From the NCBI RefSeq assembly GCF_036588685.1, contig NC_086380.1:74152001-74216000 (forward strand): a stretch of DNA of 64,000 nucleotides, in the 5' to 3' direction. Below, piece by piece: positions 48,105 to 64,000 of the stretch; positions within the stretch are counted from its first letter, which is position 1, and every line of letters begins with the position of its first letter. Under the pieces are notes generated by a model. It worked only from the letters and a program-made list of their open reading frames with translations, was not told where the DNA came from and did no database searches. The translations under genes and the position numbers were made by a program. Source of the stretch: Mytilus trossulus (lineage: Eukaryota).

Positions 48105-48654
48105 TCTATCTATACTATTAAACGAGAAGACCTCATTTTGTGTGTCGCTTCTCTTCCTTCCACAATAAATCAATCATCATGCCTTTGTGTCCTATAGGTA
48201 CCATGTATTGTCGCATTTGTCATCCATTCTTATGATTATTCAGTTTGTGTTATTTTGGAAGAAAAACGAAAAAAACTGCGTCCGGATATTTTTCCGTCAT
48301 TGGACGAAATTTTAAGTCAGGCTGGACATCTGGTTTGCTATCTACTATCATTTTCAAGTTTACTATCCACGGTGGTCACTGAGTTTATTAAATAGAGAGG
48401 GTCTATATAATATGTCAATGACCGCCGTGGATCGATTAGTAAATTGAGAGTTGATAGTAAAAAGCAAAACACTTTATTTATACTAATATATGTTTATAAC
48501 ATACCTAATAATACAGATAAACGCTAACAGAAAAACAATCGTCATGTCCCAAAGTACCTATAACTTTCGATACCTTTTCTGAAATTTTTCAGTCATAAAA
48601 TCTTTTACAAAAATTCATCGGGTCAATAAGTATATTAAATAGAGAGGGTCTATA
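48105..48654 (+). mobile_element. 5' part of a Helitron-like non-autonomous element, interrupted by the large transposon
   Basis: a|TCtatctatactattaaacgag 5' end; internal repeat attaaatagagagggtctatata broken at 48654. Confidence 0.55.
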
Positions 48655-48665
48655 TAGTCCAGGCA

Positions 48666-48858
48666 ATTACTGAAAACAGTAATATTACTATTTTATATAA
48701 TATTACAAGTAAAAGTAATATTACAAAAAATAGTAATATATTTCTTATATTACTAAAAACTGTAATTTTGTTATATTACTGAAATGTGTAATATAGTCTC
48801 TATATTACTTAAAACAGTAATATTACTAGAAAATGCCTATATTACATAGAACTGTAAC
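48666..48858. repeat. Subterminal array of ATTAC-N8-GTAAT dyads
   Basis: ATTAC at 48666, 48684, 48702, 48720, 48749, 48775, 48804, 48822, 48841; most are followed after exactly 8 bp by GTAAT or a one-mismatch variant. Confidence 0.9.
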
Positions 48859-53293: not shown

Positions 53294-54499
53294 AATATAA
53301 AATCTGTGTTTTAAACCAGAGACATATGTGCATACATGTGTCTCTATTTTATAAACGAATATGAATAAATGTTAAGTGCAAAGAATGTTAGTATCATTAT
53401 ATATATGTATATACAATTTAGATATGGGATATGTCTTTATAATACAATTCTCCCTTTGCCATTTTTTTGTGATTTTCATTTCGAAATTTTATCAACCAAA
53501 CGTGTTAACAATATTTGTATTAAACTGAACATTGTTGTTTTTCTGAACCCCTTATTTTCAAAGATTTTCGTTGCATACAGTAAGTTATAAGGTTTATTTT
53601 CTCTGTTTAAATTACTATGTACATGTATGAGGCTATGATTGGGTCACCTTTCATAAGGATATTTATGGGATTTTCAAAAAAGAGAATAATGGGACCAAAT
53701 ACTGTAATTACCATACTAAAGAAATGAAGAAATATAAAGAATAGATTGATTTATTAATTGTTGGTTGCTTAACGTCCAGTGGCAAATACTTCATGCATGT
53801 AGGACAAATATGAAAGACACAAATTGACAAACGAAAAAAAGAAATAGAGTGATATGGTAAAAAAATAAAAGATATATAACTATAGGAATGATAACCTGAC
53901 ACACTATTAATTACCGCCCAGAATCGCATATGTATATATCTATTATATATAAACGAGTATACATGTCTAATTAAATGTTTATTTTTGTCTCACTGTGCCA
54001 GCTTCCCACCCTAAACCTAAATCTCCTCATTTGTTTCTCAGGTCGGAGACGTATATATATGTTCTGTTTGGACAGTCAAGTTTTTTATTAAACTGTGTTA
54101 TAAAATCTTTTCTGATTTAGTTTTAATTGTTACATGGTTTTGATCTCATAATCTTGAGGTCTGGCATGAAGTGTTTTCCTTGGCAATTCTTTAGATATCA
54201 CATCGAATGACAAATTTCATAAATAGGTTGTGTCCATTAGCAATCCTGTTTCACTTAAATGAAAAAAAAAAAATTGAAATTCTAAGATTTAAACCTTCTG
54301 AAGGAAACACCAGAATTATTTATTTACAGAAAGAGTTACTTTCGATATTTTTATAATAAATTTTAATAAATAACCAGAACTCAAACCTGTGTAATAGATG
54401 TACTGCTTGTTGTTAAGACCATTAAATCTTTATTATGTTATATAAATACAAAGATAACTTGTATGAGTGTTATTGAGTACATTGTTGTCTATAACAAAT

Positions 54500-54790
54500 G
54501 TATATTACAGATATGTGTAATATAAAGTCCCCTTCTCTCAGTAATATTACAGATATGTGTAATATAAAGTCCCCTTCTCTCAGTAATATTACAGATATAG
54601 GTAATATAAAGTCCCCTTCTCTCAGTAATATTACAGATATGTGTAATATAAAGACTGTCCCCTTCTCTCAATAATATTACAGATATGTGTAATATAAAGT
54701 CCCCTTCTCTCAGTAATATTACAGATATGTGTAATATAATTAAGTCCCCGCATCTCAATAGTATTACAGAAATCTGTAATATTAAATCAT
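54500..54790. repeat. 42-bp minisatellite (about 6.5 copies) carrying the same ATTAC-N8-GTAAT dyad
   Basis: Unit ccccttctctcagtaatattacagatatgtgtaatataaagt. Confidence 0.95.
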
Positions 54791-57700
54791 TGTAGATCAG
54801 TCATATTAATACAGCAATGGGTAATACAGTAGCAGTTCCAAAAAAATGTTACAAGGGGACAAGTCCAGTCATGCTTCAACTATTTCTTATATATATTCAA
54901 CCAAATTTTTGACCAAAAATGAGGGGTCTGAGGCTCCCTGAATCTGCATATGATGCTTATGAAAACAAAACTTGAGTTTATATTTACACTTTGTATAAAA
55001 GAAATTGTTGATTACAGACATTTCAAATAGACAGCAAAGAGTATTTTCATTTGTATCAAAAGGACGTACACATTGAAACAATATACTATAATGGCAAGAT
55101 GAAGGGTTATAACCCTTTTTACTAGGTTTGACTATTTGGGATATTCACTGACTCAATTGTTTTATTATACCAACAAGCAAATTACAATAAAAAGTAATAT
55201 ATTGTATCATATAAAAAAAGAAGATGTAGCATGATTGCCAATGAGACAACTATCCACAACAGACCAAAATGACACTATAGGTCGCCATACGTACAGCCTT
55301 CAACAATGAGCAAAGCCCATACTGCATAGACAGCTATAAAAAGCTCCGATAAGACAATGTAAAACAATTCAAACGAGAAAACTAACGGCCTTATTTATGT
55401 AAAAAAAATGAACAAAAAAACAATATGCAACACATAAACAAATGACAATCACTGAATTACAGGCTCCAGGAGTGACTTGGGACAGGTTGTCAAAACAATT
55501 ACGTTAGAAAACTGTTTTGTGTCTATGAACATTTGGCATATATATACACAACAAAGCAACTATTTCTGTAATAAATGAATGGCCCTGAAAAGGTCCATTT
55601 TAAAGAGATATCATCACACTAAATGAGTTTTCGAGTCTTGTTTGATCTTTTACTTTGGCATTTGATGTACTTTTAACCTAGCCGTTTTCATATTAGCCAA
55701 TCAAATAATCATTTTATAATGAAAGGTATTATAATACTAAATAAATCTTAGAATCATAAGCAATGAGTTGCCTAATGCACATACTCACTGTCCGGTTGTA
55801 CTAGTTATAATTACATTAAAAAAAATATTCTTATATATATATATATATATATAAAAAAAAACATGAGCAAATCCAGCTTGTCAGGTATATATATATATAT
55901 AATATATATATAAGTACGTCTGAGTCAGTGACAACCCTACAACAGATGTATCCATCGGATCACCATCAATGATGGTGATACATGGCTCACAGTGTACATA
56001 ATGTATATACAACTCGTCTAAACATGACACTATAATAAATTATTTGTATTCTGATATATGGACTTTCAATTTAAACAGAAATAAAGAAAAAAAACACTAT
56101 CTGGCCTGCATTGAAAATATTTCTGAATAGTTTAATATTTATTGAAATCTTTAATAACAGTAACTGAAAATCATCTAAAGTCGAGGGACAAGGACACTTA
56201 TATCATATAATCTTTGTATTCAGTGGTTAGGATGGGCCACTGAAATAGTTCTCTATATCTGCTTTATTAGAAATGTTATGTTGAGAAATTTATACTTTAC
56301 AGTACATATATACAGATGGAAGAATGCCATCACATTTGAGGGAATCCCAATTTTCACAACTCATTAGCTTCACAGTTTGAAGTCATTGTATATACTACTC
56401 TTCCCAATAAACTGACCACAGATGTTACACATAGATTATCTGATAAGAAAGTCAAATTCTGGCATTTTCTGTCTTTACTTGAAACATAAATACATCTTCT
56501 ACCTGCATGACTTGTAACAATATCTATATATTGTATATACAGAGTCTGATGGTTTGATGGTTTCCAGATAATAACTTTAGTATAGAAAATAGAAATCAAT
56601 AAAATTTTAATGCAAGGTTTATAACCTCTTTAAGCAAGGAGGTTATAATATAACCTCCTTGCTCTTAAGGAAAGTTGGGATTAATTTTGGGGTTTTTGGT
56701 CCTAACAGTTTAGGAACAATGGGCCCAAAAGGGGTCAAAATAAGCATTTTTCTAGTTTCGAGACAATAACTTGTGCCTAAGTGTATGGATCTTTCTGAAA
56801 TTGTACCACAAGGTTCTATTCATAAAAGAAAGGTTGGGATTGATTTTGGGGTTATGACCAAAACTGTTTGGGAATTAGGGACCAAACAGAGGCCGCAAGA
56901 CCAATACTTTTCCAATACTTTGTATAAATTGCTTATTTCTTGACCAATTTCAATGAGGTTTTATTCTTGAATTCTTGGGGTTCTTAAATATGCTGAATCT
57001 AACCATGTATTAAGTTTTTGGAATTTGGTTCCTTTTTTTAAATTTGTCCACATGAGGTCAAAAGGGTCCAAAATTAAACTTTGATAATTTCATCAAAAAT
57101 TGAAATATTGAAGTTCATTGATATGCCAGACCCAACCGTGTATTTAGATTTTTGATTTTGGGTCCCATTTTCAAATTGGTCAACATAATGGTCCAAAGGG
57201 TCGGTCCAAAATAAATTTACTTTGATTTTAACAAAATTTCAATTCTTGGGATTCATTGGTATGCTGAATCTAATCATGTATTTGGATTTTTGATTATGGG
57301 CCTAGTTTTCCAGTTGGTCCGAGTTGGATTCCAAAATATAGACCAGATCTGGATTTTAACAGTCTTAAAATACACACACTTTGGCTGATCAATGCATTTG
57401 AATGGGTACATATAGTTGGACGCCCTCCCCTTTGTCCTGGGTTGGGAACCCCCTTTTTAAAATGGCTGGATGCCCCTGAATTACATTGACATGTTTTATT
57501 AAAACATAAAATTTAAATTATAAATTATCATAGCATTTCTAAATTATATGCAGAAATCAGCTTATTTTTATCAATATTCAAAGAAGAAAAGAAATTTATA
57601 TTTTCTAATTAAGTTATGGATTAAAACATTGCAAAAATGTTATGAAAATAGAAACCGCCTTGTCTATAAAAGAGATTATAGATTACATAATGTATTTAGT

Positions 57701-58775
57701 GGATGTGAGAACCACTATACCTACTGATTTATTACTTGTATAAACAATCAATTATGGATAGCAGGAAAAATCCTGGCTGTAAATTTAGATTAAATATGTC
57801 TAAAGGTCAGGGTTTTTTTTAATTTGCATCATTTTATCATCAGAGGATGTCAGGATGTGGTTAAAACCAAAGTTGTAAATTAATCCTCACATTAGATATT
57901 TGACTGAGCTATCAACAGTTGATGCCATGAATCTCATAGTTTGACAATAAATGCACTGATTAACTTTAACAACTTTTTGAAAAAGGAATTTCCAATGTGT
58001 CAGCAACTTTTAAGTGGGAATGACAAATTAATTTCTATCTTTTTGACTGCAAAAAAGAAGAACACATTTGTACATGATGCATTTCTATGTCAAGTCAAAA
58101 TTGTCCACACTTGTTTCAGAAACAGTTAAGGAGGTTCACTACTGACAATTTCAAAATAACAAGCTTTTCATAACATAAATATACATTTATTGGAGATTAA
58201 TAACTAATGGAACCAAAAGAACCTAAAAAAAATATATTTAGGTCAATGTGTTTGTTTTCCAGATATGAGCTAGGGAAATTTTGGTGGGAAAATGTTTTCT
58301 CTTGATTTTTTTATAGCTCTATCATAGACAAAGTAAAGTTCTCAAAAACTAATACAATACAATACAATACAGTATTTTTATTTTCCAAATTAAAGGGCAT
58401 ATTACAGAGTGATTAAAGAAACATAAAATAATAGAAAATAACAACTTTTCTAGATGGCTTTATGATTACACATGTTAAAGATTTTTAAAGAGAAAAATGG
58501 GGGTCGATGGGCAAAATTTTGTACGGCAGTCATATGAATAAAACCAGAGGATTTTGAAAATCTGACAAGAATTCCAGAACATTCTTAAGATCGGAATCCA
58601 ATTTCCTAACCAAAATGCCTGAACTTAGAACCAATATAACATAAAATATTAATTCTAAGCACACTGTGAGTGTATTGAATGTTTTAAGAAAACAATTATC
58701 ACAAGTACAGGACAGAGAAAGATAATATTATACTTCATTCTTTCTTTTCAAACAAAACAACATTTATGTTTCCAG

Positions 58776-61700
58776 TGAAGCAGTGCTTGCCAGACACCTG
58801 AAGATTCTTGAAACATCCTGCAGAATATGTGGTAGTAAAAAATTGCACAAATCATCAAGAAAAAAAGACGAGTTTGTTACTGAGTTTAAAGAAATGTTTA
58901 ATATTGATATCATCTTAGATGTACCAGAAATTCACCCAAATGCCTTGTGCAGAACTCACGAACAGTTATTATTGAAATACAGAGAACAAAAAAAACACCA
59001 AAATATGCACACTTTTAAGACCAGCATCCAAGTAGTAGATTTCAACCCACATACTGACTGTTGTAAAATATGCAATGTTACCCGAGGAAGAAAAAGGAAA
59101 AGGACAGGAGTAAACAACCCTCGTATTATACCTGTAGTATCCTTGAATCAGCCTCAATGCGAAATAGAAACCACAGATTTAGATGAACAATATAATGCTT
59201 CACCAAGTGATGTCAATGACTATTCTGATTATCTAGTTGAAGAAACATCCGAACCTTCACCTGCTGAAAGGAATTTTGAATTTGAAACCAATTTGTATGA
59301 AAAAAAGGAGCAAGAGAGTAATGTCAAAGATAAATGTATTGTTGATGATTTATTGACCAATATTGAAAATTTAACAGAAACAAGTAGAAAGTACTTCCTT
59401 AGTGAGCTCATTTGTAAACTGTCAAATGAGGAAGTATCTGAACTTGCATTTATTATTGGGAGACAGCAGCAGCAAATTTTTACAGATGATATAGAAAACA
59501 TTTCACAGCAATATACAAGCCATTCATTCTTGACAGAGTTAAAAGCTGAAAAATGGCTGTCAGAACGAAACAGTGCTTTGATTCAGTTCATTTCTGGAAT
59601 CACAAAATTTTCAATATCAGATGCAGCTGAAAATATGAAAATAGCTGTTTGTCGAATAGTTGAGCAAATTTATGCACTACGTTACCAGAAACTTGTTGCA
59701 CCAATATCATTTCTTCTCTCACTTAATATATATTCTAAAACAAGTAGCAGAGCTGTTGTTGACTTAGTCAGTAAAACAAGCCCAAGCGGAACTTACAATA
59801 CACTGCAGAAGTGGATTTCAAAATCTGGAACATCTGCTCCACCATGTCCACCAGGTACAGTTATGGCTGCCTTTGATAATGAGCAAGTTGTTGCATATAA
59901 ACGGGGTATAGCTCCTAATCAAAAGTCTAAGTGCTCAATTATTACCACTGTGCTGTATGCATCTATGTCATCAAAGAATACTATTCCCATGTTCATTCAA
60001 GAAATAGATATATTAAAGCCTAATAACTGGTTCACTCTGAATTTTTTTGAAGAACGTCTTAAAAGCATCAGGGCAAAACAGCATGAAGATGGAAATCAAT
60101 TGGAGGAACATATTATGAGGGACAAAGAGACATTTGTACAAGGTATCACTGAAATAAGGGAACAGACATGCGATGAATATGAACAGCTAGAAAAGCTGCA
60201 TTTTGAACAACTGCACCATTTCATTCAGAATGCCATTGATGCTGTTAGATATGAGCATAAAATGAATGAGGAAGAGGATTCTTACCTTGATGAAATTGAC
60301 AAAAGAACACATGAAGCAGAGAGAAGGAAAGATATTTTAGTTTGTACGTTATGCAATGCAGAGAATGGCAAGAACAAGATAGTATGTGATAATTGTAAGA
60401 GGAGAGAAGGACTTAAAGAAGCAAGAATCAAGAAGAAAGATACCGACACATCTGGAACCAACAAAAAATCAATGTCAAAAACTGAAGAAATAAAGATCAG
60501 CAAAACAGATGATAACCAAGATTCTAAATATATACGATACCAACATGTTCCATCCAATCATAAGGGGCCAACATCTACAACTTTAGGCATGCCAGCATTT
60601 GTCAACCCTAACAGCAATGAAACTGTGTCTTTAGTTCTAAGGCATATTGGAATCAATATGGGAATTAAGAGATATGGGGGTAAAGAACGTAGTTGGGCCT
60701 TTGTCTGTTGTGATGGTAGACCACACAGTCTTTACCAAAAAATTCTAGAAGAATCTGTCATGTGTAACCATTGTAACCAGACTTTTTCAACAAGGAACAC
60801 CTATAAAGAGCACCACAGATTAAAACATCAACCTTTACGTCCTTTTTGTTCTAGGGAATTCGACTGTCTATACATGCGTATTGGAGGTGGTCACTTTGAA
60901 ATGAATGCTATGAAAGCATTCTTTGAACTAAACTGGACACCCTTTTTAGAAAAATTATGTGAGCTTATGGGGTTTAAAACAGAAAATGCAAAACATTTTG
61001 CAAAAACTTGCAAAGATCATCATGTAGCTTGGCAACTTCTTCTCACTTTCCACACTTCCTCTCTGAAGGAGATGGTGATACCATTCATCAGAAGCTTGAA
61101 AGAAACTAACTTAGAAGCCACTGTTGAAAATTATTTCCGCTTTTATAAAGAATTTTTGGCACACAACTCTAACCATGCATTCCTCCATTTGCAAATATGC
61201 AGATTTTCCCAAGCTATTATTAATTTCAGAATGGGTATGAGACGTAACAATGCTGAACTTGTAAAAAGCGCAAAATATCATCTGAAAGAATTATTCTATG
61301 GACGCTTTCATCCCCACTATCAAAACATTGAACTTTTTGACTGTATTCAGTACAAATTCATGCCTGATGAAGTAAAGAAAGTTTGGGATGATACCATTTC
61401 TTTCACAGTGAGTGGAGATCCATCAAAAGGGCAGGACCTTGATTTTGTTTTGGAGGAAAAGAACAAAACAATAAAACAATATCTACCCAGTGGAACTGTG
61501 CCATCAGACGAAACCTGGAAATCAATTTGCTGTAACATCACTTTCTTTGAGTCTTTGCAAGATAAATTAACAGACCTCCTCGGTTTATCAAAACAGTCAG
61601 AATATGGAACAAAAATAATTGATATTAACAATGCCATCACCTCCTACCGCCCAGTTTTAAGGCAACATCTATCTACAATGAATGACGAACACACTTCTGT

Positions 61701-62073
61701 TTGTGGAAAGAAACTCCATTCAGAACTAAACACCTTTCTGGAACAGTCAACACAGAGAAGGCAAGAAAAGATAAATTCTTGTATTCTTGGTATCCCAACA
61801 GATAAACCAACAGGTGGACCGGTCTTCATCACACCAGACGAGGAAAAAAAATATGAGAAAAAAATGACAAAGGCTGAATTAAGAGACTCAATTAAAACAA
61901 TGATCGGAAAGCTTTTTCGTAATGTTGAACTTCAGACTCATTATTCTGCAGTTTTAGACAGCCTGAATGATACTACACAGACAAATAAGGATACCTATCT
62001 CAATCTTTACTTTGAATTACAGGATGTAACTGACAATATTCAAACTGAACTTGATAGCTTTGAAAATGAATGA
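58776..62073 (+). CDS. Transposase-like protein with RAG1-N-terminal-like zinc domain, RanBP2-type zinc ribbon, C2H2 finger and DDE-like core; main exon (possible exon 1 at 48987-49039)
   Basis: Uninterrupted 1096-codon ORF. Motifs: H-x7-CRIC...F-x-ID...IHP...C...PH-x3-C-x2-C; FDN (D365), CCDG (D644), GGGHFEMN (H704), D887-x3-E891-x2-N. Acceptor ttccag ends at 58775. Confidence 0.85.
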
Positions 62074-64000
62074 TATAAATTTTGAATCAGATAATACACA
62101 TTACTATTAATTTGCATATTTATTAAGATTAAGGTCTTTTGCTGGGCATATTGTTTTTTTTTCTTCAGATTTTCTGAATCTTCTGGTTTTTAATCATTCG
62201 AGATTAAAACATAAATTATGTTTCCACTATTAGCATCCAGTTTTCTATTGCGTGCAGAATAATTAGTCATTTGTTTTAATCTTTAAAAGAAATGTTGTTA
62301 TTTCTTTTAATAAAATTTCTTTATTGATAAAATTTAAAAATTCCAAGAGGGAACGCTTTTCCGACCATATTGTAATGGGTTATAGTCCTTAGAAATAAGC
62401 TCATAGTTCTGTAGTTTTGTTTCATTCTATATAATCCTTTAATACCGGTAATCTACTTTCAATAATAATTTATTAGCTATATAAGTATAATTTAGGCTTG
62501 TTTTTTTTGTATTTCAGAGTGGCTTCATATATCCTTAATTAAAAATTCATATTTTGACATATTTGAGAGCATCTAAACTTTATCATTGAAATTTTCTAGT
62601 TAATCTACTTATTTTTTAGTAAATAATATTTGTTAAAGAACATATGCCTCTAAAACAGTTTATACCTAATTATAAATAAAAGTATTGATTTATGAATTTT
62701 ATATTTTTGTCTTCTTTGTTTTATGTTTTTATTTTTACTTAATATTACCAAACAGAAAAAAAATTCATTCTCTCAGATGTAATTCTATTAATTTTTTTAC
62801 AAACATTTGAAATTTAGTAAGAATAATCAGGCATCCAAAACTAGCAAATCTAATTGGGACAAACACATAGATGAATCAACAAAAGAGCCAAGCACATGTT
62901 TAAAGAATTGTAATGATACTTAATGTAAACAAACTTCTAAAAGCTAATTAGTAGCAAATGTCAAAATAATAGGATCAAAAGCATCCATACCCTTAAATAA
63001 GCTACTTTCAAGATTAACTTCTTATCTTAAACTACTACTACACACTCATTGACATAAAATTACTGATAAATTTGTCAGCCTCTAATTAAGTCGTCACATA
63101 TTACATGAATAATATTTCAGAATTTCAATTAGATTGTTGCAAATATATATGATTAATTCAAATTCCATCTGAATAAAACACATTAATTTCAGATACAGTT
63201 TTGTCATCTTTTAACACCCCCTTTTTTATTCTTTTATATGAACTGATCATGTTTCATTGTATGATGTGGTATCTAGCAGCATGGGGTTAATTTAAATGAC
63301 ATGTTAATTTGTAGTTATGCAGTTTACTGATAAAAAATCCTGATAAGGTGCCAGGATTGACTAGATTATTTGTTAGAAGTGCTTTGTTGATAAATAAAGA
63401 TCATCTGTTTCAACCCTGGTTTAACCATAAAACATGGAAAAAATTTGAAATGCGTGATATATTAATGCTATCTAAATGCAATTTGGGACCTTGGTATTTA
63501 TAAGAATTGAAATTTCTTGCCCTCATCATATATTATGAAGCTTTAACTTTTTTTTAAATCTTGGGTTGGAGACAAACTGGAAGTTATCAGTTTTTAAATA
63601 ATTTACAAACAGATAATTTATTTCCATTTTAGTTATTTTTATGTTAACCATCATCTAGCAAGTGACACAGTCTACATTGTTTGTTGTTTTGTCCATTCAT
63701 TTTATTAGCTTGTTTATTTTTATATTGACCTCAAAATATTATGTCATGTCAGATATGAACAACTTTAATGAACTTAGTTACCTTAAAAAAAATCATGCAT
63801 ATTTTTTCCAAAACTTGAGACATTCTATTTCAAGGCCTCATGATAAAGTTAATTAGCTATTTACAATGTTAATAGTTTAGTCCATTAGGAATGATGTATT
63901 AACATCTGCTAGGTTTACAACACTGAAAAGCTGTTTGAGGACCAAAATCCCCAAATTGTTTTCTCCATACACATGATACAGCTAAGGTAATCAGTGCCCT

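Follow-up and report, generated by a model that had tools for sequence, protein, structure and literature searches.

A young 21.65-kb DNA transposon of the mussel Mytilus trossulus whose transposase probably joins a RAG1-type zinc domain to an Academ-like catalytic core

Results

The DNA analysed here, called the window throughout, is a stretch of 64,000 nucleotides from Mytilus trossulus (contig NC_086380.1, positions 74,152,001 to 74,216,000 of the forward strand). Coordinates are positions in the window, and those written L013 lie past its last base. The window is AT-rich, with a GC fraction of about 0.32, and its forward strand holds the main coding exon of a transposase (58776-62073; 1096 codons and a stop). 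The exon lies inside a transposon body of about 21.65 kb in the same orientation, which begins at 48657 and runs through base 64000 to L013:6302, about 6.3 kb further on. We consider it likely that the product of this exon is the transposase of a cut-and-paste transposon of young age, in which an N-terminal zinc domain of RAG1 type (NZD, or Chapa) is joined to a DDE core that resembles DUF6589/Academ proteins and belongs neither to Transib/RAG1 nor to Chapaev.

The transposase exon

The open reading frame (ORF) listing of the window gives a stop-free frame of 1096 codons at 58783-62073 (+), as expected from a preliminary description of this DNA, which had claimed an intact chimeric transposase in a stop-free 3.3-kb exon. 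The stop codon at 62071-62073 completes the 3' end. At the 5' end the sequence reads tttatgtttccAG before and TGAAGCAGTG after the junction at 58775/58776; the ttccAG makes a good splice acceptor, and we therefore take 58776 as the first base of the exon. The nearest database protein is the Mytilus edulis gene model P0001 (1244 residues, 97% identity), which joins an upstream exon at the identical junction, between KG and EAVL. The extra 146 N-terminal residues of P0001 have no coding match anywhere in the window and are treated here as the 5' exons of another copy or as part of a chimeric gene model. The exon has no in-frame ATG ahead of the zinc domain, and one or more 5' exons must therefore lie outside 58776-62073; the first in-frame Met would cost half of that domain. 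The exon is part of a gene and part of an element, and it is the whole of neither. A 26-nt inverted repeat of 88% complementarity brackets the exon (58540-58565 and 62165-62190); the repeat does not extend further, and it was rejected as the element boundary.

The element, its copies and its mobility

A search of the assembly to which the window belongs finds the 7.5 kb around the ORF again, with an identity of 98-99%, on C10, C11, C5 (two copies) and C8, and a part of it on C9. The copies on these contigs match the exact boundaries of the element at 93-99% identity, the left boundary at about 48655 and the right at L013:6302 being common to all of them. As a lower bound there are at least six copies, on five chromosome-scale contigs. 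The element has inverted ends of 34 nt (CAGTCCAGG...). The left terminal inverted repeat of the window copy (48657-48688, +) agrees with the right end, read as its reverse complement, in 33 out of 34 positions, and intact copies begin CAGTCCAGGCAATTACTGAAAAC, with the reverse complement of this sequence at the other end. Four copies are flanked by 5-bp target-site duplications. That of the window copy reads ATATA (48652-48656 and L013:6303-6307), and the others read ATGTG, ATGAA and TATAA.

The window copy has inserted into a dispersed, satellite-like repeat (48250-48652 and L013:6310-6710; paralogues at 70-94% identity), which makes a comparison with empty sites possible. Two paralogous sites, on C10 and C12, have the same flanks uninterrupted, with a single ATATA. 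Such empty sites are classic evidence of transposition. Each of the six full copies has an intact ORF, and over it they are 99.3-99.8% identical. Counted as differences from the majority base, there are 30 synonymous and 18 non-synonymous changes among the six, which indicates purifying selection on the protein. The element is thus a young, multi-copy, cut-and-paste DNA transposon of unusual length (21.6 kb), and the recent activity suggested for it from the stop-free exon is borne out by its copies, ends, duplications, empty sites and intact ORFs.

Outside the coding sequence, the copies of the element are 93-97% identical. Between 48657 and 56500 the copies differ at 3-7% of non-coding positions and by indels, against 0.2-0.7% in the exon (58776-62073); coding selection or recombination between copies could explain this contrast. 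The C8 copy (G000:C8:65093320-65109212; L003, L017 and L019) is rearranged, its left part lying opposite to the part with the ORF, and the flanks of its ends form no duplication.

The left subterminal region (48657-48830, +) contains three exact GTAATATTAC palindromes, at 48679, 48715 and 48817, and three more adjoin the right end (L013:6233-6278). In the window there are eight exact matches to GTAATATTAC, where 0.09 are expected, and we regard these palindromes as candidate binding sites of the transposase. An internal array of repeats of about 42 bp, each with GTAATATTAC, lies at 54480-54800 (+). It resembles the right subterminal array, has no terminus, and is inverted relative to the array at the left end; possible origins are the duplication of an end or a nested deletion derivative of which this is a remnant.

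An N-terminal zinc domain of RAG1 type

Residues 5-97 of the transposase (58795-59073, +) form a zinc domain of NZD/Chapa type I, as found by phmmer, Pfam and a family profile. Against all PDB sequences, phmmer matches the structure of the mouse RAG1 NZD (21wb, 137 residues) with an E-value of 1.1e-7 and full-length RAG1 with 1.9e-6; the next match has an E-value of 0.4. The Pfam family PF12560 (RAG1_imp_bd) matches residues 5-107 at 35.8 bits (E 8.8e-9), above its gathering cut-off of 23.3, and is also matched by 13 of 43 long relatives. A profile built from 43 family sequences and run against the PDB has RAG1 as its sole match (E 2.3e-8), in an alignment that starts at the first His and reaches past the last CxxC. 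Judged by these sequence comparisons, the likeness of the N-terminus to RAG1 is far beyond chance. The preliminary description had proposed precisely such a domain, with one Cys ligand replaced by His, and it is upheld in this.

The ligand pattern predicts two zinc ions, the first held by C13, C16, C56 and H59 and the second by H5, H90, C94 and C97. All eight residues are conserved in 18 aligned family members. The order in the sequence, H5; C13xxC16; IH51P; C56xxH59; H90; C94xxC97, had been read correctly from the letters, as had the basic stretch RGRKRKR at residues 101-107. It is the type I scheme apart from the last ligand of the first zinc, where His59 takes the place of a Cys of RAG1. 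This scheme is known from RAG1, RAG1L and some Chapa domains (bioRxiv 10.64898/2026.01.24.700457). The mussel protein also has in common with RAG1 the pattern H...CxxC...IHPxxxCxx(C/H)...H..CxxC, the core motif FxIDhxxD, a second zinc with a single N-terminal His and His-Cys-Cys as ligands, and a basic RG(R/L)KRKR behind the domain. Here its RGRKRKR (59083-59103, +), a probable nuclear localisation signal, is aligned with the RGLKRKR of RAG1. It differs from RAG1 in that most of the transposase family has His59, although Cys is kept in the amphioxus members, and in that the zinc domain is followed by no RING finger and is attached to a different catalytic core. Helix H2 of the domain is restricted to jawed vertebrates, the RAGL/Chapa type being H2-less (bioRxiv 10.64898/2026.01.24.700457). 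In the AlphaFold2 model, residues 1-100 have a predicted local distance difference test score (pLDDT) of 85-96 and helices are predicted at residues 2-10, 28-39 and 57-71; this three-helix prediction fits the H2-less invertebrate type.

A predicted DDE core with inserted zinc modules

A linker modelled as disordered (residues 100-179) separates the zinc domain from an all-helical domain (residues 181-347; 59323-59823, +). The catalytic domain itself, predicted to be RNase H-like by modelling and structural alignment, covers residues 356-935 (59848-61587, +). The AlphaFold2 model has a pLDDT of 87.7 for the whole protein, and for residues 340-935 a pLDDT of 93.3 and a predicted template modelling score of 0.91. 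We compared the core model with solved structures by an exhaustive VIA-align search, and the matches are nearly all DDE enzymes. The best match is the P-element transposase (PDB 6P5A; Z 11.7, 288 residues aligned), followed by retroviral integrase cores (Z 8-9), Hermes (Z 8.6), ISCth4, Tn5, Mos1, Sleeping Beauty and IstA (Z about 7-8), and finally RAG1 and amphioxus RAGL (Z 5.5-5.8). The confident model and these matches agree with the RNase H-like fold that had been supposed for the core.

The resemblance to the P element extends to a fold split by a large insertion domain between the second Asp and the Glu and to a helical DNA-binding region ahead of the catalytic domain; over the model range 265-925, the helical domain of the mussel protein is co-aligned with the pre-catalytic part of the P-element transposase. 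There is no sequence similarity to the P element or Hermes. The protein lacks a THAP or BED domain, and nothing in it points to binding of guanosine triphosphate. Pfam matches to P-element or THAP families are absent from the mussel ORF and the 43 relatives, and the P element makes duplications of 8 bp, compared with 5 bp here.

The model and the conservation of residues support D365, D644 and E891 as the metal-binding triad. D365 (59875-59877, +) stands in FDNEQ on strand 1, D644 (60712-60714, +) in CCDGRPH at the end of strand 4 (639-643 in the model), and E891 (61453-61455, +) in DFVLEEKN on helix 886-898. Across the 43 long family members D365, N366, P609, D644, P647, H747 and E763 are invariant, and E706, D887, E891 and N894 nearly so. 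For the targets we take the catalytic residues to be D64 and E152 in HIV integrase, D156 in Mos1, D128 in PFV integrase, E531 in the P element, E572 in Hermes and E962 in RAG1. With this numbering, and by offset from the alignment starts, D365 would fall on HIV D64, Mos1 D156 and PFV D128. The alignment ends would bring E891 to P-element E531 itself, and to Hermes E572, HIV E152 and RAG1 E962 with a shift of a few residues. E706 was considered as the catalytic Glu, as it follows strand 5 and stands 24 residues past H682 as in the CMC layout, and was rejected. E891 is preferred because the structural alignments all end 35-50 residues beyond it, as they do beyond the known Glu of the target. The residues quoted for the core in the preliminary description (FD365N, CCD644G, GGGH704FEMN and D887xxxE891xxN894) are in place, and the triad proposed there agrees with the alignments and the model.

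Two zinc modules are inserted in the core, as had been described. A four-Cys ribbon, C521xxC524...C535xxC538 (60343-60396, +), lies in the first half of the fold; its ligands are invariant or near-invariant, and relatives give weak zinc-ribbon Pfam matches. A C2H2 finger, C661xxC664-x12-H677x4H682 (60763-60828, +), begins 17 residues past D644, with invariant ligands and weak C2H2 matches in the PDB. The near-invariant motif GGGHFEMN (residues 701-708; 60883-60906, +), directly past strand 5, opens the large helical insertion domain that lies between the second Asp and the Glu.

Probable relation of the core to Academ

On our preferred reading the core belongs to the large DUF6589 family, which is most probably equivalent to the Academ superfamily. 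Indirect evidence leads us to accept the label Academ/DUF6589-like with fair confidence: the termini and motif blocks of a bivalve consensus, DUF6589 matches in relatives, and the taxonomic distribution. DUF6589 is matched by 20 of the 43 long relatives, with a best E-value of 2e-9. The curated bivalve consensus Academ_A.kagoshimensis_2, which is classed as DNA/Academ-1, has the termini TAGTCCAGTCATTCT...AGAATGACTGGACTA, so that CAGTCCAGGCAATT in the mussel element stands against TAGTCCAGTCATTC in this one consensus, and a common form would be (C/T)AGTCCAG...CTGGACT(G/A). In its ORF one reads, in order, ADNVDHN, TFDQPLY, GGFHLEM and ADLIIEQ, which mirror FDNEQ, CCDGRPH, GGGHFEMN and LDFVLEE of the mussel protein; both thus have blocks of the form DN..., D.P..Y, GG.H.EM and D...E in the same order. 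These comparisons were made by eye. According to a survey of transposons in bivalves, Academ has undergone an expansion specific to this group; 100 curated Academ consensi are listed there, and 2 of CMC. As of 2017 Pfam contained no Academ family, and rust fungi were where Academ was most abundant. The DUF6589 family is of later date, and its enrichment in rust fungi has been reported.

Distribution of the family

A profile search of 1.84 billion representative sequences finds 4465 clusters with E-values below 0.001, among them 557 below 1e-30. Named relatives come from Mytilus species, Ruditapes, the annelid Owenia and Branchiostoma, and the named members in the cluster look-up are from Owenia and Branchiostoma only. 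A second homologue search, with the alignment as query, gives 5 proteins, none of them named. In the ESM Atlas the matches are mollusc DUF6589 clusters, with no usable match once these are excluded. The combination of zinc domain and core is also found in an annelid and in amphioxus and is therefore not specific to molluscs; the amphioxus proteins hold both domains, and their zinc domain has the RAG1-like ligand pair CHKC. Within the mussel genome an NZD query finds 27 loci, which fall into several sub-lineages at 30-51% identity, with many frames above 900 residues.

In a FastTree phylogeny of 51 cores nearly all NZD-bearing sequences form one clade with 100% local support, and the amphioxus pair lies outside it on a long branch. 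From these sequence comparisons, the NZD version of the transposase family is old. The sister clades have two other N-terminal Cys/His modules in place of the NZD, CxCxxH...CxxC and HxxW...FCxxC, so that members of the transposase family have exchanged their DNA-binding module at the N-terminus. These modules are undescribed; they are found in proteins P0064, P0079, P0082-P0084, P0087, P0093, P0128 and P0129, and in P0043, P0048, P0050 and P0065.

DUF6589 also has matches in the genome that pass the Pfam cut-off, at least 103 in number, for example at C14:48545013, C13:51389895 and C7:38715296. Frames of 1816-2171 residues are among them, and these long frames could be XPG- or helicase-bearing forms of Academ.

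Other features of the element

A high-copy repeat is nested in the element at 56555-57340, with dozens of genomic matches at about 80% identity. It is unrelated to the element and partly in tandem elsewhere in the genome. Downstream of the transposase exon lie two small ORFs, L013:168-635 (155 residues) and L013:4577-4825 (82 residues); neither these nor the other small ORFs of the element match a Pfam family.

Discussion

In this paper we describe a mussel transposon and ask to which lineage its transposase belongs. The following mechanism would be consistent with its structure. The transposase would bind the 34-nt inverted ends, the subterminal GTAATATTAC palindromes or both, excise the element, and reinsert it with staggered cuts 5 bp apart, with D365, D644 and E891 serving catalysis. 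Which protein domain reads which DNA site we can only infer. With the Transib/RAG1 core the mussel element has in common the 5-bp duplication, the DDE triad with an insertion domain and the CxxC about 17 residues past the second Asp; in RAG1 this CxxC is 18-19 residues past the second Asp. The His pair of the mussel protein adjoins the CxxC and does not stand just ahead of the Glu, the termini read CAGTCCA and not a heptamer-like CACNGTG, and no RAG2-like gene is seen. The preliminary description had recognised no RAG1/Transib core, and this holds in our comparisons: the family profile matches no such core in the PDB up to an E-value of 10, and the structural similarity is low, at the Z-scores given above.

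One alternative is that the element merely falls into the Chapaev group (CMC/CMCT), the lineage already known to carry the Chapa domain, in which case there would be nothing new in it. The Chapa-type N-terminus is there, and if the pattern is taken literally, the stretch from the second Asp to the Glu also has a C(2)C and an H(4)H. The 5'-CA...TG-3' termini are also compatible with Chapaev, and the duplication falls inside the CMCT range of 2-5 bp (PMC12730594). In the mussel protein, however, the C(2)C and H(4)H are parts of one contiguous C2H2 finger about 210 residues ahead of E891, not beside the Glu, and no LH motif is seen. None of the CMC Pfam families (Transposase_21, 23 and 24) is matched, whereas DUF6589 is. 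The solved representatives of the Chapaev clade, RAG1 and RAGL, are weak structural matches (Z 5.5-5.8 against 11.7 for the P element). Published Chapaev elements have CAC...GTG termini and duplications of 3-4 bp or TWA, compared with CAG...CTG and 5 bp here, and Chapaev3 proteins have about 500 residues. Finally, the curation of bivalve transposons has 100 Academ families and only 2 of CMC, and the curated Academ-1 consensus, read by eye, has termini and motif blocks like those of the mussel element. We therefore regard Chapaev membership as unlikely.

It could also be argued that the core is a separate, unnamed DDE superfamily, detectable as DUF6589 and distinct from Academ proper. The size of the duplication fits neither Academ subgroup, for which 3-4 bp (AcademX) or 9-10 bp (AcademH) are reported (PMC10045372), no XPG or helicase domain is present, the nearest solved fold is the P element, and the link to Academ was read by eye. 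Yet by this reading the terminal sequence and four motif blocks are common to the mussel element and the curated Academ-1 consensus, and the taxonomic pattern (bivalves, annelids and rust fungi) coincides with that of Academ, which makes a separate superfamily very unlikely in our view. A further alternative is a family of host genes that has been domesticated and multiplied through segmental duplication, and is not mobile: the gene is spliced, with its acceptor at 58775/58776, the ORF is under purifying selection, and NCBI annotates homologues as ordinary proteins. This explanation is effectively refuted, as the end points of the copies agree to the base across five chromosome-scale contigs, every copy has a 5-bp duplication of its own, and paralogous sites are found empty. 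The triad is also conserved across thousands of clusters, which is typical of active transposases.

Several observations weigh against our preferred reading, a transposase with an NZD and an Academ-like core. A Pfam scan of the core finds no match in the mussel protein itself, so that DUF6589 is matched in its relatives only. The resemblance to Academ was seen by eye in a single Academ-1 consensus, and in the taxonomic distribution. The element departs from Academ in its duplication of 5 bp and in the lack of any Pfam match to an XPG nuclease or helicase in the mussel ORF or the 43 relatives. It departs further in its NZD/Chapa N-terminus, which is not reported for Academ, and in its length of 21.6 kb against a mean of 5.6 kb. 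We regard the preliminary description as right in its essentials, its Academ/DUF6589-like core having indirect support. The Foldseek comparison with the PDB that had been planned at the outset gave nothing with an E-value below 0.001 for the whole protein or for the core alone, and the weaker rows are only enriched for Hermes, RAG1 and the P element. The predicted convergence of D365, D644 and E891 in space derives from alignment ranges and not from coordinates. A 5' exon was looked for in the window and not found. Lastly, the left tip of the window copy is damaged: it begins GTCCAGGCAATTAC, without the terminal CA, where five other copies begin CAGTCCAGGC...

The Chapa domain has been stated to be encoded in no other known transposable elements (PMC4411706), and Chapaev has been described as the only lineage that consistently retains it (bioRxiv 10.64898/2026.01.24.700457). 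Our results contrast with these published statements that only Chapaev carries the NZD, and they suggest that the zinc module of RAG1 has travelled between different transposon lineages. If the core is not Chapaev, the NZD would be found on at least three cores, and domain transfers would be required. We tentatively suggest, as a possibility that we hold at somewhat less than even, that the NZD is a portable module, found on three or more DDE cores with no relation to each other (Transib/RAGL, Chapaev and Academ-like), here in an element that is currently or was very recently active. The phylogeny of the cores gives no direction of transfer and does not tell donor from recipient. What this study adds is the full element with its exact ends, its young and intact copies, and the breadth of the lineage.

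The question of how V(D)J recombination arose includes that of how RAG1 gained its non-core N-terminus. If our reading is right, Chapaev is no longer the sole transposon lineage with an NZD, and a large, coherent lineage of bivalves, an annelid and amphioxus with a different core would provide more material with which to date and root the domain. For the mussel genome, the work documents a very young DNA transposon of unusual length. Its intact copies, exact ends and candidate binding sites offer an experimental handle on the NZD, and the element would then be a natural and testable system for the function of this domain in RAG1, for example in the recognition of end DNA or the regulation of synapsis.

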